The notes below the pieces were generated by a model, which saw nothing but the letters and a program-made list of their open reading frames with translations, did no database searches and was not told the DNA's origin. The translations under genes and the position numbers were made by a program. A stretch of DNA of 63,326 nt, the filler included, from Octopus bimaculoides (Eukaryota), in assembly GCF_001194135.2 (NCBI RefSeq). It is 7 parts of 6 records of this genome, joined end to end, with 100 filler letters (N's around TTAATTAATTAA, not from the genome) between each part and the next. Parts side by side here need not be neighbours in the genome. Positions count along the whole stretch, not along the records: positions 32,693 to 50,871 come from NC_068987.1; 6 more parts are not named here. The stretch is one strand, 5' to 3'. Shown one piece after another: positions 10,738-50,871 of the stretch; position 1 is the stretch's first letter, and each line of letters opens with the position of its first letter.

Positions 10738-11130
10738 TCGTCTACTTCTTTTTTCTTCTACTTCTGCCTCATCTTCTCTACGTTATCTACTTTTTTCTTT
10801 TTCATATTTTCTCCTTTTCTCTCCTTCTTTCTCCTGCGACCTCCTTCTGTCACTGCTACTCCTGCTGTTGCTATTTTCCTTCGAACATACATCCTCTCTG
10901 CAACTTTCTCCCATTCACCTCCACGTTTTTTTCCCCCTTTCCTACCTTTTCTCCATCTTCTTCATCGCATTTTTCGTTTTCTACCCGACATCGTTATTAT
11001 TCTATTAAGTTTTCGATCACCTTCCCTTCTCTCCCCTTCTCCTCCTCATTATTATTCTCTCCCCTCCTCCTCCTCATTATCATTCTCTCCTCTTCTTCTT
11101 CTTCCTCCTCTTCCTCCACCTCTCCCCCAA
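10490..11130. repeat. Pyrimidine-rich low-complexity tract with (GCT)n, (TCT)n, (CTA)n
   Basis: Directly visible. Source of the spurious 281/180/174-aa ORFs. Confidence 0.9.
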
Positions 11131-11664
11131 CCTATTAATACTACTGTAGTTCATCATATCTATTGGTTTCAGTTACGTTTTCTCTATGTCACGCTTTTCT
11201 AATATCTTTACCATATTTTTACACTTCCCACTTGTTACTGTCTCAGTTGTTAACTTATTTTACAGCTGTTCCAGTTTCTTTTGCTGCACAGTTTTACACT
11301 CTGCTCGTTTCAGATCTATGAACACTACATCCTTTTGTTATCGTCGTCTTCGTAGAACAGCCTCATTTCTCAAATTGCCATTGTTATTGTTATAACTGCG
11401 TTTCACGTTTCTTTTTTTTTGTTTTTTTTTTTTAATTTGTCGTTGTCAACAGGTAGCGTTCTCCCTTCTGATTAACTTGCTTCAGGTGTCGGAGCTAAGT
11501 TTGCCCTTCTCTTCTTTTTTCCTCTTTACCTGTGCAATCTCTTCATTTAATCTCCCCTCTCATTCACAATCTTTTAAAGCTTCACATAATAAAAATTTCT
11601 TTCGCTCTAATTTTCACTTCTTCAGTCCCTCTCCATTTCTCCTTCATTTCTTATTCTTCATAGC

Positions 11665-32692: not shown

Positions 32693-32725
<33 letters not shown>

Positions 32726-32913
32726 TATAGAGAAGCTCACACCAATACACACACACACACTCATGCACACGCACATACACGCACGTACGCACATACACAC
32801 ATATATTTATATACGTCTGCACCCGCACATGCACATGCACATATACATCTATACACACACTATACATACGCATACATATAATACGTATATACGTACGTAT
32901 GTATATATGTATG

Positions 32914-32974
<61 letters not shown>

Positions 32975-33084
32975 TAAAACGTTCAGACAGACGATACAAA
33001 AGCGGACAAGAAGTATGTATATATTCATGCATGTATATATATATATGTATGTGTGTGTGTATACATACACACACACACATATAT

Positions 33085-33129
<45 letters not shown>

Positions 33130-34007
33130 TGCACTTATATAAGTATATTTTATAGATATGTGTCTCTACTGACGCATAACTAAATTAGTAATGTTGGTCA
33201 AACTAAAAATAACATCGTTTCCATCATATTTGACATTTTATTGGATCCAAGACAAAACAAGACAAAACAAGACGAGAATATTATACCGGAAGTTGCAAAC
33301 TTCATATTACCAGACCAATGTAATGGAATAGACGTTAATGCTAGGATCAAAACAATGTATTTTAAAGGGAAATAACTATGAAAATGATCATTAACTGAAC
33401 ATCGTTGGGTAGTGTTTGCTTCTTTTGTTTTTTGTGTGTTTTTGTTATCTTCTAGTTTCTTTTATTGTGACTTTTGAGTTGGTTTCATCCGCCATTAGTT
33501 GAATAAAATGCGTCTGAGATTTTCAGCGGGGTCAAGGTCATTGTCTGTGATTTATTTTTCATAAAGGGACATTTTCGCCGTGGCACAATTGGATGATATG
33601 TTAGAACGCAGAATACTGTGATACCATGAGCTCTTATATGATTTTGCGGTGCATATAAGCACTCTTGCTTATATCGCTAGCGGGAGACAATCACTGTCAT
33701 TGCCGTCGCCAGGACTACCATATCACGAGATTCCGACCTTCCTTGATCTTGTCAATGGTTGACGCCTAACCGCTGAAAATAGCGGCGACCGCTCCGCTAG
33801 AGATATACATAGAATTACAATGTGCCTAACCAGGCACTGGTGCCGCGTATGTTATTGTTGTTTGTTCCTTCTCGAGCCATGCCTGGCTCATAAGGGCCGG
33901 TTTCCCCGCCTCTGATTGGAACTCTCCCGTATGACATGTACGCATGCTCAGTGACTTGCTTTAACTTCCGCGGACGAACGATTCACAGGCTGTACTGATC
34001 GGTTAAT

Positions 34008-34275
34008 ATGTCTCCCAAGAAATCACGCAAATACTGTTGTATATGCAGCAATTATAGAGAGAAGAATTGTAGACGGCAATGTTATTTCACTACATAGATA
34101 TCCTGCAAACGTAGCTATTCGTCGTATTTGGCTTCAGAGGTCGAGACTTGTGAGGAAAGACTCTGTTTACACTGCAAATAGCCAAATGTGTTCCCAGCAT
34201 TTCGTCAATTTTAATGGACTATCGAAAGATCACCCCTTGCCATCCGTTTTTCCAAACAAAGTATTTAAAATATCA
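34008..34275 (+). pseudogene. THAP zinc-finger domain, N-terminus of a probable transposase (frameshifted)
   Basis: MSPKKSRKYCCICSNYREK /frameshift about 34065/ IVDGNVISLHRYPANVAIRRIWLQRSRLVRKDSVYTANSQMCSQHFVNFNGLSKDHPLPSVFPNKVFKIS|GTAAGT. It has the THAP hallmarks: N-terminal CxxC, (F/Y)P, W, CS.HF and the PSVF (AVPTIF-box) motif. Confidence 0.85.
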
Positions 34276-34505
34276 GTAAGTGCATGATCATATACGCAGT
34301 TAGTAGATGAGTGAAATGTCTCTTTGATTTATCTCCTCATTAACAGATTAGAACATGTTAAAATTCAAGAGGGAAACACAAATTCGAGTGGTCTACGTTG
34401 GTCTAAACACGAAAGTTTAATCTAATAAGTGTTGTGTTGATGTACATGTATTTTTAATAAAGCATTTTGCATTCAAAGAATAAATACATTGAAATTATTA
34501 CATAC

Positions 34506-34555
34506 CCACAAGGGCATGTAATGAAGCTCCGATATGGTTACAGGCTTCTCCTTGC
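34506..34555 (-). pseudogene. 50-nt exon encoding the second half of a SWIM zinc finger
   Basis: tatttcttatttaag|G CAA GGA GAA GCC TGT AAC CAT ATC GGA GCT TCA TTA CAT GCC CTT GTG G|gtatgt translates as QGEACNHIGASLHALV, matching the G.GEACSH.AA.L.AL motif of transposon SWIM fingers. Confidence 0.65.
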
Positions 34556-34727
34556 CTTAAATAAGAAATAGACTATTAGATAAACTTCAGAGATATGTGT
34601 ATGTGCATTTGTATTTGATAAATATGACAGGAATAAAAAAAAAATATTCAAAATTAAGACTCATTTATTTATTGCTTTAATTATAAATTTATTTACTTAC
34701 ATCCATAAAAAATACAATTTATTGTTG

Positions 34728-35086
34728 TATTGTTGGCACTCCGTCGCTTACGACGTCGAGGGTTCCAGTTGATCCGATCAACGGAACAGCCTGCTCGTGA
34801 AATTAACGTGCAAGTGGCTGAGCACTCCACAGACACGTGTACCCTTAACGTAGTTCTCGGGGATATTCAGCCTGACACAGTGTGACAAGGCTGACCCTTT
34901 GAATTACAGGCACAACAGAAACAGGAAGAAAGAGTGAGAGAAAGTTGTTGCGGAAGAGTACAGCAGGGTTCGCCACCATCCCCTGCCGGAGCCTCGTGGA
35001 ACTTTAGGTGTTTTCGGTGTGGGAATCGAAACCGCGATCCTATGACCGCGAGTTCGCTGCCCTAATCACTGGGCCACTGCGCCTCC
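34728..35086 (-). mobile_element. SINE family C, near full length, inserted into the SAP/SWIM gene
   Basis: tRNA-like head on - (GGCGCAGTGGCCCAGTGATTAGG...GGTTTCGATTCCC) and 3' end ...CGACGGAGTGCCAACAA. Confidence 0.9.
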
Positions 35087-35452
35087 ACCATGGTAAAATA
35101 TGCTACTCCTTAACTGTTGCTTTGCCTTCATCCGTAGCACGAGGTAATTGTGAATATCATTATCTGTGAAATTCGGCAACTTATAAAGATCTTTAGTCCA
35201 ATCTTCTAAGCAGATTGGGATCAGGTAAAACTTCACCGAGAGGAGATATAAGCTTCTGCTTATTCCTGTCTGAAGTACACTTATCGTCCGATGAATTTAA
35301 TTTGTTGACATTCTTCATCGACAGAATTTTCATACCTTTTAACCTTTCAACCAAGTCCGCTTTTCTTCCAGTAACATACTGTCCATATAATCTTAAATAA
35401 TTCCTTAACTCGGGAACAGTAAGTGCTTCGATAGCTGAGTCATCATATCCAT
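35087..35452 (-). pseudogene. SAP-domain protein N-terminus (ORF2-like of ISL2EU/Harbinger-type elements), frameshifted
   Basis: DDSAIEALTVPELRNYLRLYGQYVTGRKADLVERLKG (SAP core 35423-35340)...EVLPDPNLL /frameshift about 35207/ EDWTKDLYKLPNFTDNDIHNYLVLRMKAKQQLRSSIFYHG. The probable ATG at 35452 is out of frame by 1 nt. Confidence 0.8.
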
Positions 35453-35564
35453 GATAAGACGTAAAACAATAACAATAGCGTGGATCGTCTTCGGAAGTTT
35501 GTCTATATGGAGCGCCGCCTAGCTAAGGGAGATAACCTACTCATCGGAAAGCCCTATTCCCCAC

Positions 35565-35737
35565 CTGGACGCTGTTTATCTTGATATGCGATTGCCATGT
35601 CGTGCACACATGGTTGTGATTCATGTGCCTGGTGTACCCTTATCATACGGGTAGTGATGATGGGTATGTTGGACTTCATATACTTGTACCCCGATGTCAC
35701 TTTGATGGCACGCATTGTTCTCTCACTCAATAATAAA
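35565..35737 (+). mobile_element. Probable retroposon 3' end with (TAA)n tail
   Basis: Complex block ending CTCTCACTCAATAATAAAAATAA. Family not assigned. Confidence 0.45.
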
Positions 35738-35744
35738 AATAATC

Positions 35745-36057
35745 CTTTCTCCTAAAGGCACAAGGCCTGAAATTTGGGGGAGGGAGTGTTTCACTGGTAC
35801 TTAATTTATCGACCCCGAACGTAGTGACAAACAAAATACTGCTAAGCATTTCGCCCGGTTTGCTAACGATTCTGCCAGCTCACCGCCTTTACATCGACCC
35901 CAGCATTTGACTGGTACTTATTTCATCGACCCAGAAAGGATGAAAGGCAAAGTCGACCTAGGTGGAATTTGAACTCGGAACGTAGCGACGGGCGACATAC
36001 TGCTAAGCATTTCGTTCAGCGTGCTAACGATTCTGCCAGGTCGACGCCTTCAATAAC

Positions 36058-36092
<35 letters not shown>

Positions 36093-37305
36093 TGATGATG
36101 ATGATGATGATGATGATTATGATTATGATGATGATGATGATGATAATAATAACAATAATAATGATGATGATAATAATATGAACAGAATGTAGATACAGAA
36201 GGAGTGGTAGTTCAATTCAATTCAATATCCTATTCTACTCCAAGCACAAAGCCCGAAATTTTGGGGGAGAGGGGGGTCTGTCGATTGGATCGACCCCAGT
36301 ACGCAACTGCTACTTGATTTGGCGACCCCGAAAGGATGAAAGTCCAAGTTGACCTCGTTGGAATTTGAACTCAGAACGTTAAGACCGACGAAATACCGTT
36401 AATACCGTTTCTGCCAGCTCGCAGCCTTAACTCAATTCAATATCGATTCACCAATTTCCAATAATCCAATAATGTGATTATGAATTAATCACAAAGGTTT
36501 TATTGTAAATGACATGACGAGATTCTAAGCTGGGAGTTTTAAAAAAATGCTTCTGCTGCTTTCCCTGGTCATGAACGTTAGTGATTACACTACAGTGAGT
36601 ATACCATCTCGTGTTAGCAAATTCAGGACGTTTATTTGGTAGAACTGTTAGCACGCCGGGGAAAATGCTCAGTCGCATTTCGTTCCTCTTTATGCGTTCT
36701 GAGTTCAAATTACGCTGGTGTTGACTTTGCCTTTTATCCTTTGGGGGTCAATAAAATAAATGCCAGCTTAGTACTGGGAATCGATGTATTCGACTAACCC
36801 CTTCCCCTAATACTTCAGGTATTGTGCCTATAGAAAAAAGGATTATTTTATCAAATTCATTGACACACCGGGCAAATTGCTATCAGTAACATTTCGTTCG
36901 TCTTTTCGTTCTGAGTTCAAATTCCGCCGAGGTTGACTTTGCCGTTCATCCCTTCTAGGGTCGATGAAACCAGTACCAGTTGAGCACTGGGATCGATGTA
37001 ATTGTCTTCCTGCTCCCACCAAACTTACGACCTTGTGCCTATAGTAGAAAGGGTTATTTTAACTGTATATGAAAAGGGAAAGAGAGTAGGTGTCCTGTAA
37101 TGTAAAAAAAATCCTTTCTAATTTAGTCATAAAGTCAGCATTTTTGAGGGGAGGGGAGGGGAAAATGGTTTTCATCGATTCCAGTGCTCAATTGATACTT
37201 ACTTTTATCGACCCCGAAACAATGAAAGGCAAAGTTGACACCAGTGATATTTGAACCCAGAACGTGAAGAGCCGGAAGAGCAATTTGTAACGATTCTGAC
37301 AGCTA
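35745..37305. mobile_element. Cluster of about six SINE family B copies in both orientations
   Basis: Minus: about 35745-35890, 35890-36050, 36230-36430, 37140-37305. Plus: about 36640-36840, 36860-37055. All share the GTCGACTTTGCCTTTCATCC core. Confidence 0.88.
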
Positions 37306-38007
37306 ACCGTCGTACTGTGGTGCAAAAATCGTATAATCGATAAAGTGGTTGTTCTATAAACACAGCAACAGATATAAGATTCTACCGCCATTCATGGGCT
37401 AGTGGTTTCGAAATCTAATCCCTATAATCCGAAATATAACACCCGTAGGGATTTATGTGTTTTCATTCTTTGGATTTTCATTAATAAAAAGTGAAAAAAA
37501 AAAAAAAAGGAATATAGCAGAGAGATCGATAATGTTCACTATTGATAAATTTCCTGTTATGACGCTAAATAGGTTTGATCCTAAAATAGGTTAGCCATAA
37601 AGCCATGATGTTCTAATAGGAATCTGAAGTTATGAGAAATATTGTTAGTCTGGCATTAGAGGAACCGTCTTTTGTGATTTACGGTTAGCCTAATCGATGC
37701 AGTATTTCCAATAATTCACGCACGCTTTTTCCATGTTCTTATTGCTCCACTGTCTATGTTTCCGCTCTTTCTCTCTCTCTCTCTTTCTCTATCTATCTCT
37801 TTATCGCGTTCTACCTCTCTATCCCTCTCTCGCGCCTCTCTCTTTCTCTTTCTCTTGTGCTTGCTCTTCACTTCACTCTCATTATAATTTCTATGTGAAA
37901 TATTTCCAAGTTGCACATGAATTTCTGGATGCATGTGTGCGTGTGCGTGTATGTATATTAGTACGTGTATGCGTATGTAAATATGTGCATATATGTGTGC
38001 CTCTATC

Positions 38008-38042
<35 letters not shown>

Positions 38043-38399
38043 GCTATTGTGTTGTTTTCCTTCAGCATCGTACTTGTCCTATTTTATTGTGTTGTTTTGT
38101 CTCGTTTTCTTTACATTGTAAGAAGAGAACTGATTTTTTCATCACCCCTTGACCTAACCATGCGTCTTTTCATAGCGTTTATTCTTTCTGCGTTTCAGTA
38201 GGTAACACACCATTAAATGCTTTACCTGTGTTTGTGTCCTTATTATTTTTCCGTGTTTTTTAAAATTCAATTTTTGAGTGGTTCATTTTTAGTATTCTCG
38301 TTTGATGAGAGCAGTCGAGTTTATTTCAGATATTCTCATTTTAAAAATCATCTCCGGCTAATCGTTAAGAGGACATTGGAGTTGCCTTGGCGGAGGTTT

Positions 38400-39200
38400 A
38401 CGCTCTCTGAGTGCTCTTGTTACGTTGCTATTGTTGTTGTTGTTATCATTATAATTTTCCGATTGATTTGCAGTGCTACCGGGGAGTTTTGCCTGTTTTG
38501 GAGATAAACTTTACAGGCACGGAAGTGCCCTTCAGCCGAGCATGTCCGAGATGCGCGCAGGACGACGAGACGGTTCTGCATGCACTCGTGCAGTATCCGA
38601 GCATTGCTGACCTGTGGGTTTATGCCGAATATCTGCTGTCGCGTGTGGGACGGCTCCGGCTGTCAACTGTTTGAGATGGATTCGGCTTCAACGAGATTGA
38701 AGGGGCTGAAGACAAACACTTTTCTCTTTGGCCAATCACTGATGAACTTCAAGTTTCACTTGAAGGGTGTTACGTTCCAAAACCTCCCAGAGATATAAGT
38801 AAAATCTAAAAAAAATATAAATACCTATTGGCCGCAGAAACCCGGATATATTGAGGAGTCTGTGATATAAATTTACATATATTAACCAGAAAAATCCACG
38901 ATGTACTGAGGGCGCGATAAGTGAACCGCGATATGATGAAGGATTACTGTATTGTCTTCTAGTCAGTTTGCTGAACGGTGGATGAACGAGAATGGTGCGA
39001 GCGAACGACGAGCGAACGGGCGAGAATGGTACGAGCGAACGGGCCTGCCCTGAGCATATGCCTATAGTTGGAAAAAGGACAGGAAAAAAGACACTTACCC
39101 CATAAGTCAGGGTGCCCATGGTTTTTTATGGGTTTTTTCCATGAGCAGCCGTCGAACGTTCCCTTCCTATTGAGGATTGCACTTTCTTTCTTTCTTTCTT
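38400..39200 (+). mobile_element. L1/Tx1-like LINE ORF2 C-terminus (zf-RVT) and 3' UTR, decayed and interrupted
   Basis: CYRGVLPV / GDKLYRHGS / CPRCAQDDETVLHAL (C..C....ET..H) ... TRLKGLKTNTF...FKFHLK. The frame resumes after 38950 as LSSSQFAERWMN / ARMVRANGPALSICL*, then a T-rich UTR. Confidence 0.75.
38885..38949. mobile_element. Tigger/pogo-like DNA transposon terminus inserted in the LINE
   Basis: Reverse complement TA|CAGTAATCCTTCATCATATCGCGGTTCACTTATCGCG resembles Tigger TIRs (CAGTAATCCCTCG...) with a flanking TA. The other terminus was not found. Confidence 0.5.
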
Positions 39201-39665
39201 TCTTTTTTATTTTGTTAGTCTTGTTTACACGCAAAACCCCCAATACACATTCACACATACACACACACTCACACACATACACACACACACTCACACACAT
39301 ATACACACACACTCGCACACATATACACACACGTTCTTTGTTTTGTCCTGTGCTGTCCATAATGTTTTCCTTAATCTTCTTGTGGTTAATAAATACATCA
39401 TCATTATCATTTTTTTTTGCCTCTGTATACCTAGTGGAAGAGTTACCACAATCCTATAAAACATTACCAAAAATGAAGTAGATTGACAAGTTTATTTTTT
39501 GAACCTGCGGAAAGTGTGCTAGATGCCGAAATATCGTTCACTTGATAACAATGGCACTCTTCTTTTTTTGATCGGAACAACTGGAACTCCCGTAGCCGTA
39601 ACACACAGCGTATCCGTTAAATCTCTCTCTCTCTCTCTCTCCTTCTCTATCTCTCTCTCCTTCTC

Positions 39666-39759
<94 letters not shown>

Positions 39760-40969
39760 TCTCTATGTAACGTACCGTTGTGGATAGCCGGCATCTATAT
39801 CAATTTGAGAGATAATTTCGGTATCCACCAGGATAACTTATCCCCATATATATATATATATATGAACCCGGGACCATGTGGTTGATAAGCAAGCTACTTA
39901 CCACACATATATATGCATACATATATATGTGAGTATGTGTGTGTATGTGTGTGTGTATTTATGTATATATGCACGTTAACAATATCATTATGGAATCTAT
40001 ATAATGGCTAAGAAATTCGCTTCGCAACTATGTCATTCCGAGCGTGTTCTTGTTGAGCGATTCTGTATGGATGTGACTCTTCTGTATATTTAAAACGTAG
40101 AACGCTCCTTTGGAGTAATGTCAGCCAACCTAACTGTATGTGGGGATGGAGTCGGGTGTGCGTTAGTGCCTGTACATGTGTGTGTGTGTGTGTATGTGTG
40201 TGTGTGTGTGTGTGTGTATGTGTGTGTGTGTGTGCGCGCGTATATGTGACTGTGTATATGTAACTGTGAATATGTGTGTGTTGCATACATGCACACAAAC
40301 ATGCATAGCTGCATATATTTCGTCTGCTGGGATATTGAATGTTAAACTAATTCATAAATATACATGCACAAGACAGACAGACAGACATATGTATGTAGAT
40401 ACGTACATATACTCACATACACACACACACATACACACATACGCATACATATATATATTTATATTGATATATATGCAAATAAATCTATATTACCCCATAA
40501 GTATGTATATATGTCTGTGTATATTTATGTACCTGTATATGTATACGTATATACATACACACACGCACATATATGTATATATTTATACGAATATATACGT
40601 GTATGTGTTTGTTTGTGTGTGTGTGTGTGCACAATTACATATACATGTATACGTGCATATACGCACACACGTAAGAATACTTAAGTCTCTAACGTGTTGT
40701 GACACATCTTAAAATGTTGAACAAAGTTGTTCTGGAACAAATTCCATATATTCATTAAATGGTGTTGTTCCAAGTTGGTTAGGGAATTTAAGTTCGTGTC
40801 CTCCAGAGAATAGCATGACAAAGACGCCGAGGTCTGTATATTAATGTTTTCTTCTGATAATCACTATTTTCGTTTGTAAATTTTCCTTCGTTTTAAACTG
40901 AAAACTAAATCGATAAACAAATCGATATTATTTGTACATATAAATGTATTTATTCATGCGTGTGTGTGT

Positions 40970-41042
<73 letters not shown>

Positions 41043-41182
41043 TACGTGTTTGCTTGTATACTCTAATAGGCGCTTCCTTATTTTTGGTTGTGTAGTTTAA
41101 TCAGTTATTGGAAATTCTGTTTACCAAATTAATGTTGAGCCGTTCGTATTCTCCGGTGTAGTGTTTAGTTATTACAGGAAGT

Positions 41183-41242
<60 letters not shown>

Positions 41243-41384
41243 CGTGTGTGTATGCGTGTGTGTGTGTGTGTGTCTGTGTGTGTGTGTGTGTGATCAATGT
41301 ATCATATATCCGAAAAGGAAGCACATTCGAAAGCATAGAACAGTAATGTATTTGTATCCAGTTAAGTCTAAGTACGGCCAAGGA

Positions 41385-41472
41385 GTGACCAATGGTTTCG
41401 CACCCACAAAGGCCTTAGCCCCGTGAACGTTTCGGGACTAAGCCCTTTGCGGATGCGAAACACATTTGTCAC
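41385..41472 (-). ncRNA. Candidate pre-miRNA hairpin
   Basis: On -: a 28-position stem (24 WC, 3 GU, 1 mismatch) and a 9-nt loop AAACGUUCA. A lower stem GUGAC..AAUG/CAUU..GUCAC adds about 10 bp. Three of four mismatches become GU only on this strand. Confidence 0.65.
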
Positions 41473-41523
41473 TCTCACTCTCTCTCTCTCTCTTTCTATA
41501 TATGTATATATATGTTTCCTCAT

Positions 41524-41557
<34 letters not shown>

Positions 41558-41575
41558 NNNNNNNNNNTATGTTTC

Positions 41576-41620
<45 letters not shown>

Positions 41621-41879
41621 ATATATATGTATATGTATATGTATATAAGGAAACAAAGAAAATGGAGATAAAATTGATAATTGATAAACATCAATATTGT
41701 AGTTAAGCTTGATAATACCTTGAACAACGCCAAGAGAAACAGCTGTCAGATGAGATACTGTCATTTTATAACCAATAAATGATAATTGTCGTTTATCAAT
41801 TATCTATTTTATCTCCATTTTCTTTATTTCCTTAAATAGAAACTTCGGTTTATTCTTGTTCTTACCTATCATTCGTGAA

Positions 41880-42214
41880 GGCGCATGGCTCAGTGGTTAG
41901 AGCGTCGAGCTTACGATCGTGAGGTTGTAAGTTCGAATCCCGGACCGGGCTGCATGTTGTGTTCTTGAGCAAGACACTTTATTTCACGTTGCTCCAGTTC
42001 ACTCACCTGTAGAAATGAGTTGCGACGTCACAGGTGCCAAACTGTATCGGCGCCTTTGCCTTTCCCTTGGATAACACTGGTGGCGTGGAAAGGGGAGTCC
42101 GCTATGCATGGGTGACTGCTGGTCTTCCATAAAAACAACCTTGCCCGGACTTGTGCCTTGGAGGGTAACTTCCAAGGTGCAATCCCATGGTCAGTCATGA
42201 TCGAAGGGAGTCTC
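41880..42214 (+). mobile_element. tRNA-derived SINE, family D, full length
   Basis: A box TGGCTCAGTGG (41886) and B box GTTCGAATCC (41931), followed by about 270 nt of non-tRNA body. No acceptor stem. Confidence 0.85.
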
Positions 42215-43107
42215 AGTAGAGCCTATATTTTATGAGCATTAGTACTAATACTCCTAATCACATATAGGTAAGACACCAGTTAATTCAAGTATCCCTTAGA
42301 CGATTGTTATAACCTCTAACTTAAGGCAGAGAGACAGACAGAGACAAACAGACTGACAGACAAACAGACAGGCAGACAGATAGATAGATAGATAGATAGA
42401 ATATCAGGAAAACGCAATGAATAATAGAGACCCGGTAAATAAAGGGAATGCGATTATTTTGTCAGTTTATTTACCTGTCTGATAATAGCTACTCGGATTG
42501 GATATGTAATGTTAATACTCATATAAACGGAACTATTGTAAAAAGCCGCTTTGCTTAACAAAGTCGATACGACATAGCAAACATATGTAAACAAATAAAT
42601 ACACCAGTTTCGTTTCCATAATGGAAGAACGTTAAATTTTGCGCTGACGCCCATTTTAGATTTTAAAAAATTAAAATTATCAGTGCCATGTGATTGTATC
42701 TGGTATGCGGAAATTGTGCAGAATCCTAATACGTATGCCTACTTAACAAGCTACATGCTTATTTACCTACCTAATTTCCTATCAATGCTTCGCGTTACTA
42801 CATAGAGAAAAACTGAAGTGCGTGAATTTGAGAGGGGAACATGTTGAATAAAATCATAATTCACTGATTTTCCTGTATTTTCTTTTACCCAGAATCAGGA
42901 ACTTTTCAGTCTTTTACCAACCACCTACTTGGTAGCAAGGTCGTCAAGGAAAGTATTTCGTTTTAACCACCATCCTTTAAGTCTTAAGAATGTCTTGCAA
43001 ATTTTTATTGTCGTAAATATCGTGATCATTTATAGCATATGAATTAAGGATTTTCCCAATTAAGCATGTGTATGTATGTATGTATGTATGTATGTATGTA
43101 TGTATGT

Positions 43108-43276
43108 ATCATCATCATCGTTTAACGTCCGCTTTCCATGCTAGCATGGGTTGGACGATTTGACTGAGGACTAGTGAAACCAGATGGCTACACCAGACTC
43201 CAATCTGATCTGGCAGAGTTTCTACAGCTGGATGCCCTTCCTAACGCCAACCACTTCGAGAGTGTAGTGGGTGCTT
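43108..43276 (-). mobile_element. RTE LINE extreme 3' end inserted in a (TATG)n microsatellite
   Basis: Homologous to 28268-28440 (CATCATC.TTTAACGT.CGCTTTCCAT...CCCTTCCTAACG.CAAC). Flanked on both sides by (TATG)n. Confidence 0.88.
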
Positions 43277-43323
43277 ATGTATGTATGTATGTATGTATGC
43301 ATGCGTGTATGTATGTATAACTA

Positions 43324-43816
43324 CAGGGTGTCCCAGAATGAGCTTTTCCAATTAAATCGGGCAAATTTTAAATGACAGAACTGTATGTTTATTACTTAAT
43401 TATGGAACCAAAACAAACAGATTTATAAGTCGGATGTCAAAACTTTATTGAAAATCTTTTATCGTCTGCTCCGTCTGTATCCCTGCAAATTTCAAATCTA
43501 TCTTTAGCATTGCGAAACACATTTTGAAGCATTTCAGGAATTATCTTCTGCGCTGCTGACTGAAGGCGTTCTTTAAGTTCAACTAAACTTTTGCTCCATC
43601 CTGGGGGTGGATGTAAAGAAAAATTTTGTAGCTAAATTGAAAAAAAAAATGCTGTCGTGGACAGATAAGCGGGATCCAACAGAAGCGAAAATAAAATTTA
43701 ACAAAAAAATTCATAAAATTAACATTTATTGAACATGATAAACATAACTAAAAGTGAGTTTTCTTTAAAAGACTCACTATTTCACTGATACAAATAATTA
43801 ATTCTGAAACACCCTG
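43324..43816 (-). mobile_element. Internally deleted Tc1/mariner element
   Basis: TA|CAGGGTGTCCCAGAAT ... ATTCTGAAACACCCTG|TA (TIR 14/16, TA target duplication). The minus strand encodes SLVELKERLQSAAQKIIPEMLQNVFRNAKDRFEICRDTDG, a Tc1/mariner transposase C-terminal signature. Confidence 0.85.
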
Positions 43817-44009
43817 TATAAATACGTCAAATAACACAAGAAAAAGAAAGCCTGTAAAAATAAAATTTTATTTACTTTAGATATATAATAGCATGAAAGA
43901 TTTCAGCTGTTTTATGATTTTGCGTATTCGTTTAGTTTGCAACACAAATGAAGATATCAGCAGTTTATTGGTTTATAATACAATTCTCTCAATAATAATA
44001 ATAATAAAT

Positions 44010-44930
44010 ACTTTTAATTTATGCACAAGGCCGGTAATTTTTAAGGTAGAGCGGGTGAACGACTTGACTGCTACTTTATTTTGTCTACCCTGGAGAAATT
44101 TAAAAAGCAAAGTTGACAACAGCGGAATTTGAACTCAGAAAGTAAAGCGACCGAAACGTACTTCTCTGACGTCTCAACCGGCAAAGCCACTTTTAATAAT
44201 TATTAAGGGCAAGGCCACTATATTTTTTTAAGGTGACAGGGATAGTCGATTACAATGATCCTCACCCCACCTACCTTCACCAAACACTTTACTCATACTT
44301 TATGCTATAAACTACGTTTAGATGAATGACAAAGTTAACCTTGGTGGGATTTAAGTTCGTAATGAAAAAAGCTGGAACAAATACCGCAAGGCACACTTCC
44401 CAAACTTCTAACGATTCTGCCAGTTCCACCCTTCTGTAAAGTAAAAATTCTTTCAAGGCCTGAAATCTTGGGGTGGGGAGCTAGTCGAGTATATGAACCT
44501 TACCACTCAGCTGGTGTTTATTTAATCCACCCTGTGGAACAAACAGAGACGGAAAAAATGTCGCTAGTTATTTTGTTCGGCATTCCAATTATTGTACCAG
44601 CTTGCTGTCTTCTTAAAAGCTGCACTAAAGATTTCTATATAACCAAGGAGCCAAACCTCAAAGGAAGAGGTTCAATTCTTTGAAATCATCTTCATTACTT
44701 CACTGGTAGCTTTTTATCAATCTTAGTGTGATGTCCACCGCCCAGCCGAGGCAACCAATTCACAATCCTCTTACTAAAAGTTATAATAATCTTTACTTTA
44801 AACACAAACGTTAAGGGAGAAATAGTTAATTAAATCGACTCCTGTATTTAATTGGAATAGAGGTAATGTTGACTTCGGCGGGATTCAAACTCGGAAAATA
44901 AAGGGACGCAACTAAATATCGCTACATAAG
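44010..44930 (-). mobile_element. Several degenerate SINE family B copies
   Basis: Recurrent AAAGTTGAC...GG(A/G)ATTT(G/C)AACTC motifs at about 44105, 44330 and 44865. Confidence 0.65.
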
Positions 44931-45369
44931 CATTCCGTAATGTTAAGAAATTCAACTTCAAGGAGCTCATTTATTGAACTTTCTCACCATTCTATATATG
45001 GTTCAATTATGAAAACTTAATGAATATTTTTTCCTAACGAAAGCCTACAAATATCTTTCTGCTTTCACTTTTAAGTCGATTTTTATTGCTTCCAAATCAT
45101 AAACATATGATAATATAATATATCACTCAAAACCGCATTTCATTAAAGTGTTTTGTTCAATTAAAAAAAACCATTATTTTTTAAAATGAAATTTTATGGA
45201 TCATTAAGTAAATATAACTAAAAGAAACATGCAAATAAACAGTTAAAAAAATAATGTAAATAAACAAATACTTCTAGTCTCTTCAAAATAGAATCACTGA
45301 TAAATGTAATTTTGTTACAAATAATTTTAAAAAATGTAAAATATTTTAATGGGACAATTATTTATAAAT

Positions 45370-45529
45370 AGGTGTGGGTGTGTGGTGAGAAGCTTGCTTC
45401 TCAATCACATGGGAGTAGGTTCAGACCTACTACGTGGCACCTTAGGCAAGTGTCTTCTACTATAGCCTCGGGCCGACCAAAGCCTTGTGAGTGGATTTGG
45501 TAGACGGAAACTGAAAGAAGGCCATCGTA

Positions 45530-45571
<42 letters not shown>

Positions 45572-45790
45572 TGCGTGCGTGCGTGTGTGTGTGTCCACAC
45601 CAACGCTTGAGAGCCGGTGTTGGTGTGTGTTTATGTCCCCTTAACTTAGCGGTTCGCCAAAAGTTACCGAGAGAAGAAGTATTAGGCTTTAAATAAAATA
45701 AGTCTTAGGGTAGACTTCTTCGATTAAAACCCTTCAAGGCGATGTCCCAGCATGGCAGCAGTCAAATGGTTGAAACAAGATAGAAAGACA
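45370..45790 (+). mobile_element. SINE family A, full length, antisense just downstream of the toxin-like gene stop
   Basis: Head, (GT)n linker and tail CAGCATGGCAGCAGTCAAATGGTTGAAACAAG are all present. Confidence 0.9.
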
Positions 45791-45867
45791 GAAAAAAAGA
45801 TAAAATGTACTGGAAAATGGCGACGGCTTAAAAAACGAGCCTGTTTTTTTTTTTGTCTCTCTGTATT

Positions 45868-46269
45868 TCAGGCGTCAAGGGGTTCTTCATCAATTTTTAT
45901 ATGTTGTTCGACACCGTAACGGAATTTACTTTTCCCCGTTACACTCCATATAAGGCAACCATTTTCTCTTCTACAATTTCTCATTATATCTTGATGCGAA
46001 CTCAAGAGCTGAACAATGTTTCCCTCAACGACCGATAAGAATGAATTGTTGTCTAGCAAGTTGGTCAGTACAACAACGATACGCCCTCGAATACGAACAG
46101 ACAAACGGAAGTCACAGTGGAACTCCTCTTCTGTTACCACCAAAGAAGCCGTCGTACGATGTTTTGGTCGTACTTGCACAGAACTATTCGCTGTCCATGT
46201 CAAACTCTCTTCGTGTGTTTCTTCACTTCCTTTCTCCATAGTCACCTCACGACCGAATCCTGTACTCAC
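45868..46269 (-). CDS. Aerolysin-like ETX/MTX2-family pore-forming protein, last coding exon (133 aa + stop)
   Basis: Acceptor TTCTTTCTTTTCTTTTTTTTTTTTTCAG| then, in phase 0, VSTGFGREVTMEKGSEETHEESLTWTANSSVQVRPKHRTTASLVVTEEEFHCDF...VTGKSKFRYGVEQHIKIDEEPLDA*. Motifs EE.LTW..NS.V.V.P...T.A.LV..E and G...FRYG.EQ.I are typical of invertebrate ETX/MTX2-like proteins. Confidence 0.88.
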   Translation of the reverse strand: MSTGFGREVTMEKGSEETHEESLTWTANSSVQVRPKHRTTASLVVTEEEFHCDFRLSVRIRGRIVVVLTNLLDNNSFLSVVEGNIVQLLSSHQDIMRNCRRENGCLIWSVTGKSKFRYGVEQHIKIDEEPLDA

Positions 46270-46483
46270 CTGAAAAAAAAAAAGAAAAGAAAGAACATGT
46301 CTTTACTCTGCAGGTGCATCATGTTACCACATGAATTTTCTCCCCTGTAGCAACAGGGCAGTGGCAGGGTAAACAATTCTAGAGAAAATGTAATGTACTA
46401 AAGGTTAATTTAATGTCACTTTTAATATGCCCAGTATAAGATCTGAAATTCTGGTCATACTGATGTCTCTGCCATCTCACCGC

Positions 46484-46895
46484 CTTAATAATAATTCTTT
46501 CAAATTATAAGGCAGCGAGCTTGCAGAATCGTTTGTACGCCGGACCAAACGCTTTGTAGGATTTCGTCCATCTGTATGTTCTAAGTTCAAATTCCGCTGA
46601 GGTCTACTTTGCCTTTCATCCTTCCGGAGCTGATAAAATTTATACCAGTTGAACTCTGGGATCGATTTAAATCTGCTGGCTTTGTGCCAAAATTTGAAAC
46701 AAATTATCCTTTTAAATTTTGGCACAAAACAAGAAATTTTCAGGGGAGGGGAAAGCTGAATACATCGAACTCATTGCTCGACTGATCCTTATTTTATCGA
46801 CCCTGAAATGATGAAAGGCATAGTCGACCCCATCTGAATTTGAATTGAGAACGTGAAAAACGCCATTAACTATTTTTTGCTACAATTGCGCTAGC
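46484..46895. mobile_element. Tail-to-tail inverted pair of SINE family B copies in the toxin-like gene intron
   Basis: + copy about 46484-46700 and - copy about 46715-46895. Confidence 0.82.
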
Positions 46896-47059
46896 TCACT
46901 GCCTTTCATCAAAATTTAAATCAGAAATTTACATCGTACTGCAACTTTGATCATTTCACTTAAGAAACGAAAATAATATCTAACAGTGCATGGGTTCATG
47001 GCGGACGTAAAGAATGTGGACCGCACCCACTTTCGTTATTTTTATTTATTTTTATTTTT

Positions 47060-47099
47060 TACAGAATCCCCCATTTTTGAGTACCGAGATTCTGATTCT

Positions 47100-47131
<32 letters not shown>

Positions 47132-47405
47132 NNNNNNNNNNNNNNNNNNNNNNNNNNNNNNNNNNNNNNNNNNNNNNNNNNNNNNNNNNNNNNNNNNNNN
47201 NNNNNNNNNNNNNNNNNNNNNNNNNNNNNNNNNNNNNNNNNNNNNNNNNNNNNNNNNNNNNNNNNNNNNNAAAAAAAAAAAAAAAAAAAAAATTCTGAAA
47301 AAGTGAAAATTGAAGAATTTGGGGGAGGGGGAATTCAAATTTTAAAATGGCGTTTTTTTTTTTCGCAAAATCAGAATCTCCGTACTCGAAAATGGGGGAT
47401 CTGTA
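47060..47405. mobile_element. MITE-like element with about 45-bp terminal inverted repeats (spans a gap)
   Basis: ACAGAATCCCCCATTTTTGAGTACCGAGATTCTGATTCTGC versus the reverse complement of GCAAAATCAGAATCTCCGTACTCGAAAATGGGGGATCTGT, about 5 differences. Confidence 0.6.
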
Positions 47406-47895
47406 TAAAAAAATTTTGGCGGAGGGAGCCAGTCGATTAGAGAAAAATGTACTAAATGAATTAAATAGAAAATAATTTAAGGTGTCAAAACTTGTGAATA
47501 AATATGTATATCTGTATGTGTAAAACGATGACTTGATTGGCACTATATTTTGTCAAGCTCAGAAGGATAAATGGAAGGAAAATTTGATCCCGACCGGATA
47601 TAAACTAAGAACGTGAAGTGTGTTAATGAATACTGCAAAGTTTTTTTGTTTTTTTTTCTTGACATCATTGTAACGATATTAACTGCTCGCTATCTGTCAT
47701 TCTCTGTGAAATACTTACTACAAACTATTCAAATCATCTCTTCACCTCTTCAGATTTGAAACCTCGCACCAATGTTTAAAAACCATTATTTGAATTAAGC
47801 AACCGTTCCACTGAAAACGTGAATGGGAAATAGAAACGAAAAGATAAGGTTAAAAATAAACTGAAAACAAACCAGTTACCAAATGCGCTACTGAC

Positions 47896-48258
47896 CTCCA
47901 TAATATCCTCAGGGAGGGCTAACTTCAGTTCAATATTAAATCCTTTCGAGAAACCTTGAGTCAAAGCTGTGGTACATGTAGAAGTAGTGGTTCGTTCTGT
48001 AGTGAAAGAGTTCTCCTGATTTTCCTTCGTATTATTTTCGTAGATGGATTTAAATACTACTTGCGACCTCTGACCTTTGCTACGATCCTTGTTTAGATAT
48101 TCCAAGTCGAACGTGCTAAATTCCGTGTGGTTCCAATTGATCTTCAATAGTACGTTTTTGTATTCGTGCTTTTTAGCGTCCTTACTAGACTTCTGAAATT
48201 GCGTCCAAGCCCAGTTCTTAATAAGTGGATCCAAATCAACAATGTTGGCATAGTCCAT
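47896..48258 (-). CDS. Aerolysin-like ETX/MTX2-family pore-forming protein, first clear coding exon (121 aa)
   Basis: MDYANIVDLDPLIKNWAW...VVFKSIYENNTKENQENSFTTERTTTSTCTTALTQGFSKGFNIELKLALPEDIME|GTCAGT. Family motif F...Y.N.T...Q...F.T.R.T.S followed by an amphipathic hairpin. The phase-0 donor matches the phase-0 acceptor at 46269. An acceptor TAG at 48266-48264 implies an upstream exon. Confidence 0.88.
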
Positions 48259-48699
48259 GTTCACTATATGGCCAAAAAAAAAAATAGATAAATAAATAAA
48301 AGACCATAGGCATTAATTTTAGATGAATTTTCAGGGATAATATTTTTAAAATATTGATCTTTCAGTGAGATCCAGAAAATAAAAATACATATAAAAATTT
48401 AAAATAGAGTCAAGTGATCGCAACTCTCAAGCAGAAGGGGAGATAAGTTTAGGACATCCGGTATATATTCTAGGGAATATAGTCTAGAGACCCAATTCTG
48501 GACTATGTATGCTATGGCTTGCTGTCAGTAAGTAAATACTATATGGCCAAGGGCATTGATTTCTTAGACGGCCCTGATGACCACTGGCACCACCACTACC
48601 AACTACCACGACAGCAACTACATCTGCAAGAATAGTACAACCACTACTACGACCACTACCACTACTACCATCACCGCCATCGCCAGCACCATCACCACC

Positions 48700-49110
48700 C
48701 TACCCCTAAAACACGAACCCTAACCCTAAAACCCTAAAGCTAAAACCAGTACAAACGCACGGACGATGTCATAAATAACAGTACCACGGATAGTTGTTGT
48801 TGAGAAACTACGGCACTAATTTTATTCAAGGGAAAAGATCCCATGACACCGTTAGAACATGTTGTTTACATTCCACGGCAGTAATTGTTTTCACCTCAAT
48901 AGACGTCAGTGATTGGTTNNNNNNNNNNACATGTTGTTTACATTCCACGGCAGTAATTGTTTTCACCTCAATAGACGTCAGTGATTGGTTGAAATTACCG
49001 AAATACGACAATTTTTTACATGGAATAACTTCGAATACAAAAATTTTTATCTTTTCTAATAACACAAAATATACAAGTATACGAAGTTTGAAAGTGTTTC
49101 GGTACCAAAA
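48700..49110. repeat. Probable non-autonomous transposon remnant with CCCTAA-like motifs
   Basis: ACCCTAACCCTAAAACCCTAAAGCTAAAACC followed by complex sequence. A 61-nt part is duplicated exactly across a 10-N gap. Confidence 0.4.
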
Positions 49111-49808
49111 ACACTGCATAAAGCATAAATGAAAAGTGTTGCCCGTCAAATCAAAAAGATCCATTCGGTGTTCAAATCCTAGCCATATTGACTTCGCTCT
49201 CCTGTTCGTTAAAAATACAATTTACCCGTCTTATACAAAACTGTGGCGTCATATGCTACGTAAAAAATAATCATTATTTGATTACACTTTGTTATATTAT
49301 CATTCATTACAGTTACTATATTTAAACTTTTGATAAACTGCAACGTCATAAATTTGGTGATCAATGTGAAAAAAATGTACAAAGAAAGAAAATAACAAAA
49401 AATCATAGAAAGAAGGAGAGACTGTATGAAAGGAAGAAATTATGTGGTGAAAGAAGAGAGAATATTTTAAAAGTCAAAATAACTGTAATAATGGATTCTC
49501 TCTCTCTCTCTTTCTTTCTTTCTCTTTTTCTCTCTCTCTTTCTCTGTCTCCAACTCTCTTTTTTTACTTCCGCTATGTCGTCCCATTCTCAAATTAGTTA
49601 CAAATATTTAAAATTTCCCAGCTATTTTATTTCTCTATGTCTCTTGTGTATTTTTTTCCCCCTTCCTCTTACATTCTCCGAATTTATTCGGACGCGTTTT
49701 CTTTTTATTTCGAACGCAAATGTATGTTAGTTGGCGCTTGCGTTAATACGTCATGGCGGCCAGGAGTCGTCGATGAAACAATATAATGGTGTCGTATAAT
49801 TTACTCAC

Positions 49809-49835
49809 GTTGTTGTTGGGAAGAGAGAAGCGCAA
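49809..49835 (-). other. Candidate 27-nt upstream micro-exon of the toxin-like gene
   Basis: tttgttttacattag|TTGCGCTTCTCTCTTCCCAACAACAAC|gtgagt. Symmetric phase 1 and stop-free when joined to 48263. Confidence 0.3.
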
Positions 49836-50164
49836 CTAATGTAAAACAAATAAACACTACCCCCCACCCCCCACCCCCGCACATGCATGCATGCATATAC
49901 ACAATCGCGCATATGTACGTAGTCAAGTATGCATATGTGATTTGAATATTTCGTATGTATATATGTATGTGCGTGCGCTATAGGCACAAACTTATGTCCA
50001 TATGAACTGCATACGTATGTGTTTATCCCGGGGCTGAGGAATATATAAGCGTTTATTGTTTATACCACTTAAATGCAAATATATGTGTGTGTGTGTGTGT
50101 GTGTGTGCAGAAGAAAGTGAGAATTTGTGTTTACATTCATCCATCCATGCATGCATACATACAT

Positions 50165-50195
<31 letters not shown>

Positions 50196-50284
50196 TGTGT
50201 GTATACATTTATGCATATGTACGAACACACACATAAACTTCAGTGTATGTGTTGTATGTGTGTGAGTGTGTGTGCGTATAAATA

Positions 50285-50343
<59 letters not shown>

Positions 50344-50344
50344 A

Positions 50345-50410
<66 letters not shown>

Positions 50411-50797
50411 CTTATATAAAGACATATATGTACGTGTGTGTATATGATATGCATGTATGTATGTATATATATATGTGTGTGTGTCCGTGTGTGTACACAC
50501 ATACACACACATGCATAGGTGCACACATAAATAAGCGTCTAAATCTATTCCAATATATAAATCCATTCATCCTGCGCACACCATCACGAACTTTCTCATA
50601 TAGACATATAAACACATAAACCATACATTCATGCGCATAAATACACAGACACACACACACGCACATACATTCTATATGTGTGTATAGAAAGAAATACGTA
50701 CACGCATAAATACCTAAACGTATACATACATACATACATAAAATATTTTTTCAGTGTCATAAGATATAATAAACTTCAAGTTATTTTCTTCAACTAT

Positions 50798-50871
<74 letters not shown>

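Follow-up and report, generated by a model that had tools for sequence, protein, structure and literature searches.

A leaderless octopus protein of predicted ETX/MTX2 pore-forming fold and its likely kinship with the snail glabralysins

Gene model and locus

We analysed a joined stretch of 63,326 nucleotides (nt), hereafter the window, whose positions serve as coordinates throughout, and within it the part at 32,693-50,871, which derives from NC_068987.1 of Octopus bimaculoides. The minus strand of this part carries an intact two-exon gene, LOC106877292, with a 254-residue product of the ETX_MTX2 family. Coding exon A (47896-48258, 363 nt) comprises codons 1-121 from the ATG at 48258, with the donor GTCAGT directly after it; a T-rich tract and CAG lead into coding exon B (45868-46269, 402 nt), which comprises codons 122-254 and the TGA stop (45870-45868). 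The intron bounded by these signals (46270-47895) measures 1626 nt as assembled and interrupts the hairpin-coding segment after Glu121. Since both exon lengths are multiples of three, the intron is in phase 0 and the product has 254 amino acids (aa). Exon A encodes the N-terminal helices of the putative head, with a WAW motif, then long beta-strands, a Ser/Thr-rich tract and the hairpin's first arm with its tip; the second arm, an EESLTW motif with an invariant W146, further long beta-strands, a C-terminal GKSKFRYGVEQ strand and an EEPL tail are encoded by exon B.

Scripted splicing placed the motif TQGFSKGFNIELKLALPEDIME|VSTGFGREVTMEKGS across the exon junction at residues 100-136, EESLTW at residues 141-146 and GKSKFRYGVEQHIKI at residues 233-247. 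The spliced product is identical over all 254 residues (254/254, 100%) to the RefSeq entry 'uncharacterized protein LOC106877292 [Octopus bimaculoides]', and the part matches chromosome CM046607.1 of GCA_001194135.2 at ~8.48-8.50 Mb, base for base and gap for gap, on a scaffold of 110 Mb. A first-pass annotation, made from the DNA alone, had joined 48258-47896 to 46269-45868 in a product of about 254 aa, had quoted an insertion hairpin, an EE.LTW motif and a C-terminal strand, and had taken the source for a probable cephalopod. The gene model proved exact by scripted splicing and RefSeq identity, all three motifs are present in the spliced product, and the RefSeq and chromosome identities agree with the source.

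A tblastn search of the product against the part returned the two exon blocks only. Tandem paralogues, for which the first-pass annotation had proposed a search, were found neither in the part nor within ±10 kb in O. bimaculoides, O. sinensis, Argonauta or the chiton Liolophura.

Family membership and predicted fold

The product belongs to the ETX/MTX2 family by sequence and by predicted structure, as the first-pass annotation had proposed. In a Pfam scan, residues 69-253 matched ETX_MTX2 (PF03318) over profile positions 32-220 of 228, scoring 43.7 bits where the cutoff is 22 (E 3.7e-11, well beyond chance), and at E<=10 this was the sole match, with neither an aerolysin-family nor a lectin domain among the results. 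The best sequence match in the Protein Data Bank (PDB) was the zebrafish natterin-like protein Dln1 (E 6e-8, residues 70-182), which shares 'PE-I-EVSTGF' in the hairpin; further matches included the mushroom haemolytic lectin LSL, the lamprey immune protein (LIP), Bacillus thuringiensis (Bt) parasporins and Cry23/Cry51.

Structural comparisons used an AlphaFold (AF2) model built from a 72-sequence alignment, with a predicted local distance difference test score (pLDDT) of 93.3 and a predicted template-modelling score (pTM) of 0.81. An earlier model from 11 sequences (pLDDT 71.5), in which the hairpin was disordered, was superseded by it. With the predicted model as query, all 39 Foldseek matches in the PDB at E<=1e-3 were pore formers of the aerolysin family. 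Whole-chain alignments were obtained with 2D42 (template-modelling score (TM) 0.63, 262 columns), Cry23Aa1 (0.54), Cry51Aa1 (0.52), epsilon toxin (0.49) and parasporin-2 (0.45-0.47); epsilon toxin and parasporin were among the comparisons proposed in the first-pass annotation. Dln1, LIP and aerolysin align through the pore module alone.

The model predicts an elongated, beta-rich, single-lobe protein of three-domain ETX/MTX2-type architecture, in which an amphipathic hairpin would pack against the middle of the molecule. Residues 9-30 (48169-48234, minus strand) are modelled as two N-terminal helices (9-24 and 26-30, pLDDT >90), and conservation marks D8 and the W16-A17-W18 motif in this region. 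Together with, probably, residues ~200-225, these helices may form a head of the epsilon-toxin type (domain 1), an assignment drawn from the whole-chain alignments with three-domain toxins and not from residue-level mapping. Because the alignments to three-domain toxins span the whole chain, the octopus protein is not a bare pore module. It had been described as minimal and free of a lectin receptor-binding domain; the absence of a lectin module stands, and 'minimal' does not fit the putative ETX-type head and the whole-chain alignments.

The insertion hairpin

Directly before the hairpin lies a Ser/Thr-rich tract (residues 85-101, 47956-48006, minus strand), in which 59% of residues are Ser or Thr compared with 18% in the whole protein. 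Hydropathy and conservation delimit the first hairpin arm and tip at residues 103-121 (47896-47952, minus strand), running from F103 to L115 and through P116, E117 and D118 to I119-E121. The second arm, delimited by alignment, hydropathy and the ratio of non-synonymous to synonymous divergence (dN/dS), follows across the exon junction at residues 122-132 (V122 to M132; 46237-46269, minus strand) and includes the conserved GFGREV motif. In the 72-sequence alignment, mean hydropathy alternates at residues 107-115 and 119-132 around Pro116, which is invariant in all 72 sequences and is followed by acidic residues. These results agree with the first-pass description of a Ser/Thr-rich segment flanking an alternating polar/apolar hairpin.

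Constraint is strongest here: the hairpin segment (residues 102-136) has a dN/dS of 0.02-0.13, the lowest among segments for which it could be computed. Other long strands alternate too, as the fold predicts, and alternation alone is not unique to the hairpin; we assign residues 103-132 as the canonical insertion hairpin because of their position, their conservation and their match to the hairpin of Dln1.

Absence of a signal peptide

The octopus N-terminus, MDYANIVDLDPLIKNWAW, lacks a hydrophobic core (maximum Kyte-Doolittle hydropathy 1.05 in a 10-residue window), and the position of the start Met is conserved in nearly all homologues. A polypyrimidine tract and AG (48259-48290, minus strand; AG at 48265-48264) end 5 nt upstream of the ATG, leaving an untranslated spacer. 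The same layout precedes the ATG in Argonauta and in O. sinensis, where the spacer is 6 nt long and contains an in-frame TGA. We considered whether this AG could be the acceptor for an upstream exon encoding a signal peptide and rejected the idea: the spacer frame differs between the two Octopus species, and together with the in-frame TGA this makes the spacer non-coding, so that no upstream exon can add a leader. Judged from these signals, the AG is the probable acceptor of an intron in the 5' untranslated region (5'-UTR). In a relative from the ENA assembly ERZ25084522, the match between the genome and an RNA-derived contig breaks off precisely at an acceptor of this kind, 8 nt upstream of the ATG, and this establishes that transcription and a spliced 5'-UTR layout exist within the family. 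Across the gene structures compared, the 5'-UTR intron appears to be a common feature, with its end 5-19 nt upstream of the start codon.

The leaderless state extends across the family. Among 167 relatives with complete N-termini, 94 begin within 8 residues of the conserved helix, and about 165, drawn from molluscs, annelids, flatworms, rotifers/acanthocephalans and nematodes, lack a signal peptide. A start resembling one was seen in about one relative, a Seison protein of 458 aa. Extensions of at least 8 aa occur in 73 relatives, and 22 of these fit the N-myristoylation consensus, falling in at least five independent clusters (P0043/P0183 and P0051/P0194 from Mytilus, P0032/P0179/P0182 from Haliotis, P0061 from Pomphorhynchus, and P0097/P0201). 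These myristoylation/palmitoylation-type extensions are 17-29 residues long and mostly carry adjacent cysteines, as in MGQCLSG, MGSVICCCCC, MGLLCCCG, MGTCCST and MGNLLSN; the octopus protein itself has no such motif. N-myristoylation-type modification is confined to cytosolic proteins. The near-absence of signal peptides and the lipid-anchor-type starts suggest that the whole family may be cytosolic or membrane-tethered. The absence of a signal peptide reported in the first-pass annotation was thus borne out by the conserved start Met, by the differing spacer frames and by the family at large.

Selection, age and distribution

The open reading frame (ORF) is free of internal stops in four species, and Nei-Gojobori estimates of dN/dS were 0.30 against O. 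sinensis (synonymous divergence, dS, 0.21) and 0.06-0.07 against Argonauta, where dS is saturated. By these measures the octopus gene is functional and under purifying selection.

An exhaustive profile search of 1.8 billion representatives returned 823 relatives, 117 of them at E<=1e-30, most being 250-290 aa long and matched from their first residues. A search of a word-indexed database of 5.8 billion proteins with the 72-sequence profile gave 17 matches and no new named members. Molluscs are represented by Solemya, Mytilus, Haliotis, Gigantopelta, Elysia, Plakobranchus and a chiton, and other animals by the annelid Paralvinella, the schistosome Heterobilharzia, acanthocephalans, Seison and the nematodes Trichinella, Trichuris, Soboliphyme and Strongyloides; all of the named relatives are annotated as 'uncharacterised'. 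Patterns from the mollusc alignment, applied to the GTDB set of one genome per bacterial or archaeal species, produced 52 pattern matches and no close relative, in what is a weak, pattern-limited search. Spliceosomal introns, the 5'-UTR intron, 823 representatives across protostome phyla and the lack of a close prokaryotic relative in that search together indicate, at the level of sequence, that this is an old animal gene family and not a contaminant or a recent transfer.

In Trichinella, gene models of 781-1171 aa named 'DNA excision repair protein ERCC-6' (P0076 cluster) carry the ETX/MTX2 domain at their C-terminus (~877-1137). These fusions are probably merged gene models, since Trichuris, Soboliphyme and Strongyloides have stand-alone versions of 258-292 aa.

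Intron, assembly gap and flanking sequence

An assembly gap of 139 N (47132-47270) lies wholly inside the intron, between poly-T and poly-A runs, and is enclosed by a palindromic (inverted-repeat) element at 47066-47400 with arms of 48 nt (47066-47113 and 47353-47400) that are 92% complementary. The element looks like a miniature inverted-repeat transposable element or a foldback-type repeat, and this palindrome, rich in A/T homopolymers, probably caused the assembly break. A homologous palindrome with arms of ~110 bp is intact in O. sinensis (L003, ~11060-11340).

We asked of the gap whether it hides an exon, and this was ruled out by comparison with relatives. An intron at the same position (after codon 121, phase 0) is gap-free in O. 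sinensis (1790 nt) and Argonauta hians (1553 nt), whose proteins are 87% and 74% identical to the octopus product, respectively. The gap flanks are collinear with the O. sinensis intron, where the corresponding interval is ~118 bp, forms the palindrome centre and has no coding potential. Moreover, the coding sequence (CDS) is uninterrupted in the chiton Liolophura (L002, 10001-10756) and in the ERZ25084522 relative (L006, 8001-8756; L007, 6533-7288), and the protein alignment shows no additional residues at the exon junction in these intronless relatives. The gap-free introns and the intronless relatives together imply that the reading frames are continuous across the gap in the mature message.

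The number of CDS introns varies among relatives, from none in the chiton and the ERZ25084522 relative to one in octopods, located in the hairpin, and 3-4 in the glabralysins of the snail Biomphalaria (PMC7016736). From this distribution, CDS introns look like lineage-specific gains. The ERZ25084522 relative encodes the same 251-aa protein (P0008) on two contigs, L006 (139.5 kb) and L007 (71.7 kb), both at ~15x, to which the RNA-derived contig is 99.8% and 98.7% identical; the two copies represent either a pair of haplotypes or the outcome of a very recent duplication.

Upstream of the gene, ~600-730 bp from the ATG, a 10-N gap (48919-48928) sits between two perfect direct copies of 62 nt (48857-48918 and 48929-48990), which almost certainly represent overlapping contig ends left unmerged at a scaffold join and not a biological feature. 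An interstitial telomere-like repeat (CCCTAA/CCTAA-type, ~2-3 copies) occurs at 48699-48747, ~450 bp upstream of the start codon. The flanks at 32693-45600 and 49400-50871 consist mostly of di- and tetranucleotide microsatellites (AC/TG, TC/GA, TA, TATC, CAGA), and the long 'ORFs' in them are translations of these repeats, not genes. Neither tRNAs nor other convincing ORFs were found in the part, and no gene is called within 10 kb on the public chromosome, where the far upstream side has large N gaps.

Comparison with described pore formers

The closest described family is that of the glabralysins, of which Gla1Aa1, Gla1Aa2, Gla1Ba1, Gla1Ca1 and Gla2Aa1 were reported from Biomphalaria glabrata in a study whose tree contains a Cephalopoda cluster (Lassalle et al. 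2020, PMC7016736). Like the octopus gene, glabralysins are encoded by a mollusc, contain introns and have the single-lobe three-domain ETX/MTX2 architecture, with 2D42 and 4RHZ as best templates at TM > 0.5. The glabralysin primers give the N-termini MSLQVVDLE and MPIDLVDL and the C-termini VKVTQAPL and IKITETKL, of 8-9 residues each, which fit the family consensus and the octopus MDYANIVDLD ... IKIDEEPLDA. The two differ in that the snail has five paralogues with introns at varying positions, whereas the octopus has one copy (as searched) with a single CDS intron in the hairpin segment. Glabralysins are expressed in a tissue mosaic, one of them in haemocytes, and two are induced ~two-fold by Schistosoma (PMC7016736). 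That text contains no discussion of signal peptides, lipidation or intracellular location of glabralysins. In another mollusc, Aplysia, the published immunome includes five ETX/MTX-2 genes, classed there as putative antimicrobial pore formers (PMC9334734). Among the named relatives that we retrieved, no Biomphalaria glabralysin was found via the primer-derived termini or cluster look-ups, and no paper mentioning identifiers of the octopus locus was found in the literature searched.

Bacterial ETX/MTX2 proteins of the Mpp class, namely 2D42 (Cry45Aa1 according to PMC7016736), Cry23Aa1, Cry51Aa1/2, parasporin-2, Mpp75Aa1 and the epsilon toxin of Clostridium perfringens, belong to the same Pfam family and align with the octopus model over the whole chain (TM 0.43-0.63, E down to 2e-14). 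Like the octopus model, they are elongated single-lobe proteins of ~250 residues with a head, a hairpin and an oligomerisation domain, but sequence identity is only 15-18%. The bacterial toxins are exported or crystallised and usually activated by proteolytic trimming of terminal peptides, whereas the octopus protein is leaderless, leaves no space for long propeptides and, unlike them, comes from an animal gene with spliceosomal introns.

Dln1 (4ZNO) and LIP (5ZU4) resemble the octopus protein in being animal, immune-associated proteins with an aerolysin-type pore module, and the matches cover the C-terminal ~110-220 residues of their 313-335-residue chains. In both, the N-terminal half is a lectin module of the jacalin type, which serves target recognition; the octopus protein lacks this module and is predicted to have an ETX-type head instead. 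Aerolysin and Biomphalysin share the superfamily and the presumed pore mechanism. Biomphalysin is described as a soluble, secreted anti-parasite effector of a mollusc encoded by an intronless gene, whereas the octopus gene is leaderless and contains introns. Against aerolysin the structural TM is 0.25-0.40, and the octopus protein is single-lobed, without the small N-terminal lobe, and gave no match to an aerolysin-family hidden Markov model. Finally, LIN-24 of Caenorhabditis elegans is aerolysin-like, and its gain-of-function alleles kill the cells that express them (PMC12945463). It offers a functional precedent, not an established homologue, for a superfamily pore former acting inside cells; a search seeded with Trichinella found proteins of Trichuris, Soboliphyme and Strongyloides and did not return LIN-24.

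Proposed mechanism and role

We consider it likely that LOC106877292 encodes an apparently single-copy, leaderless beta-pore-forming protein of the ETX/MTX2 family that is the cephalopod counterpart of the glabralysins and serves innate defence. The protein would be made in the cytosol as a soluble monomer, and its head, formed by the N-terminal WAW helices and probably residues ~200-225, would bind a membrane component. Monomers would then oligomerise into a ring, and hairpin 103-132, with its P116-E-D tip, would unfold from domain 2 and join the hairpins of neighbouring subunits to form a transmembrane beta-barrel and so perforate the target membrane. Lacking a signal peptide, the protein would reach its target by one of two non-classical routes: release through cell damage or unconventional secretion, or action on intracellular membranes from the cytosolic side. 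The biological role would most likely be constitutive innate defence and not venom.

A bolder version of the second route is that glabralysin-type proteins in general are cytosolic beta-pore formers acting from inside, where, once tethered or recruited at the cytoplasmic side of membranes, they would perforate the plasma membrane, phagosomes or pathogen vacuoles. The leaderless family, the N-myristoylation consensus in at least five clusters and the killing precedent of LIN-24 point in this direction, and we regard the idea as tentative, with the odds clearly against it. Equally speculative is its corollary, that these proteins are a protostome analogue of executioners of the gasdermin/MLKL type and not secreted humoral toxins.

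Several points weigh against the proposed explanation. The kinship to glabralysins is drawn from the domain, the templates, the architecture, the published tree and the termini, not from a full-length alignment. The splice junction is supported by the RefSeq model, canonical signals and conservation; the gene is apparently single-copy within ±10 kb and at the sensitivity of a word-indexed protein search; and the localisation and release route are pure inference. Pore formation by the octopus protein is itself inferred. The lytic activity of glabralysins is listed as future work (PMC7016736), and the best structural match, 2D42, was deposited as a 'non-toxic crystal protein', which means that the fold is no guarantee of lytic activity.

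Alternative explanations

The last two of these points would also favour a protein that has kept the ETX/MTX2 fold and lost pore formation, to become a non-lytic binding, regulatory or storage protein. Parallels exist elsewhere in the superfamily: the toad aerolysin-family paralogue BmALP3 is documented as inhibitory, a negative regulator (PMC7995273), and metabolic and cytoprotective roles are reported for LIN-24 (PMC12945463). The hairpin speaks to the contrary: it is the most constrained segment measured, and among 72 divergent homologues its polar/apolar alternation persists and the Pro at its tip never varies, as would be expected from selection for membrane insertion. We judge a non-lytic protein unlikely.

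A classical secreted venom or salivary toxin used in predation is less probable still, even though octopods are venomous, potent toxins of bacteria and animals share the fold, and aerolysin-like proteins have been recruited in other venoms, such as those of centipedes and asp caterpillars. The protein has no signal peptide, an upstream coding exon is excluded, and neither the part nor the ±10 kb examined in three octopods shows tandem expansion. Non-venomous animals, among them chitons, abalone, mussels, annelids and parasitic worms, have orthologues of equal length, selection is purifying and not diversifying, and no link to octopus venom was found in the literature searched. The first-pass annotation had left a choice between an immune and a venom effector; the venom half is the least likely for a leaderless, apparently single-copy gene with orthologues in non-venomous animals, and innate defence, or membrane perforation inside cells, is more plausible.

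The gene lies in gap-rich, microsatellite-rich sequence, its fold is best known from bacteria, and its CDS is intronless in the chiton and another relative, all of which might suggest that it is a pseudogene or an artefact of gene prediction, or that bacterial contamination or a recent horizontal transfer brought it into the assembly. This explanation is effectively refuted by an ORF that is intact in four species with dN/dS well under 1, by a canonical spliceosomal intron conserved in three octopods, by the location on a 110-Mb chromosome scaffold, by a relative that is transcribed with a spliced 5'-UTR exon and by the pattern-limited GTDB search, in which no close relative appeared.

Significance

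Much of the context is already known. The protein is in RefSeq with an ETX_MTX2 domain, mollusc genes have been catalogued (five in Aplysia and five in Biomphalaria), and the published tree has a cephalopod cluster, so the octopus gene is a cephalopod member of a named family and adds little by itself. It is, at the same time, a clean, apparently single-copy and well-conserved representative of that family in an animal with good tissue-level resources. What might be new is the family-wide leaderless pattern and the recurrent lipid-anchor motifs. If these proteins do act inside cells, they would constitute an unrecognised class of intracellular beta-barrel pore formers in protostome immunity or cell death.

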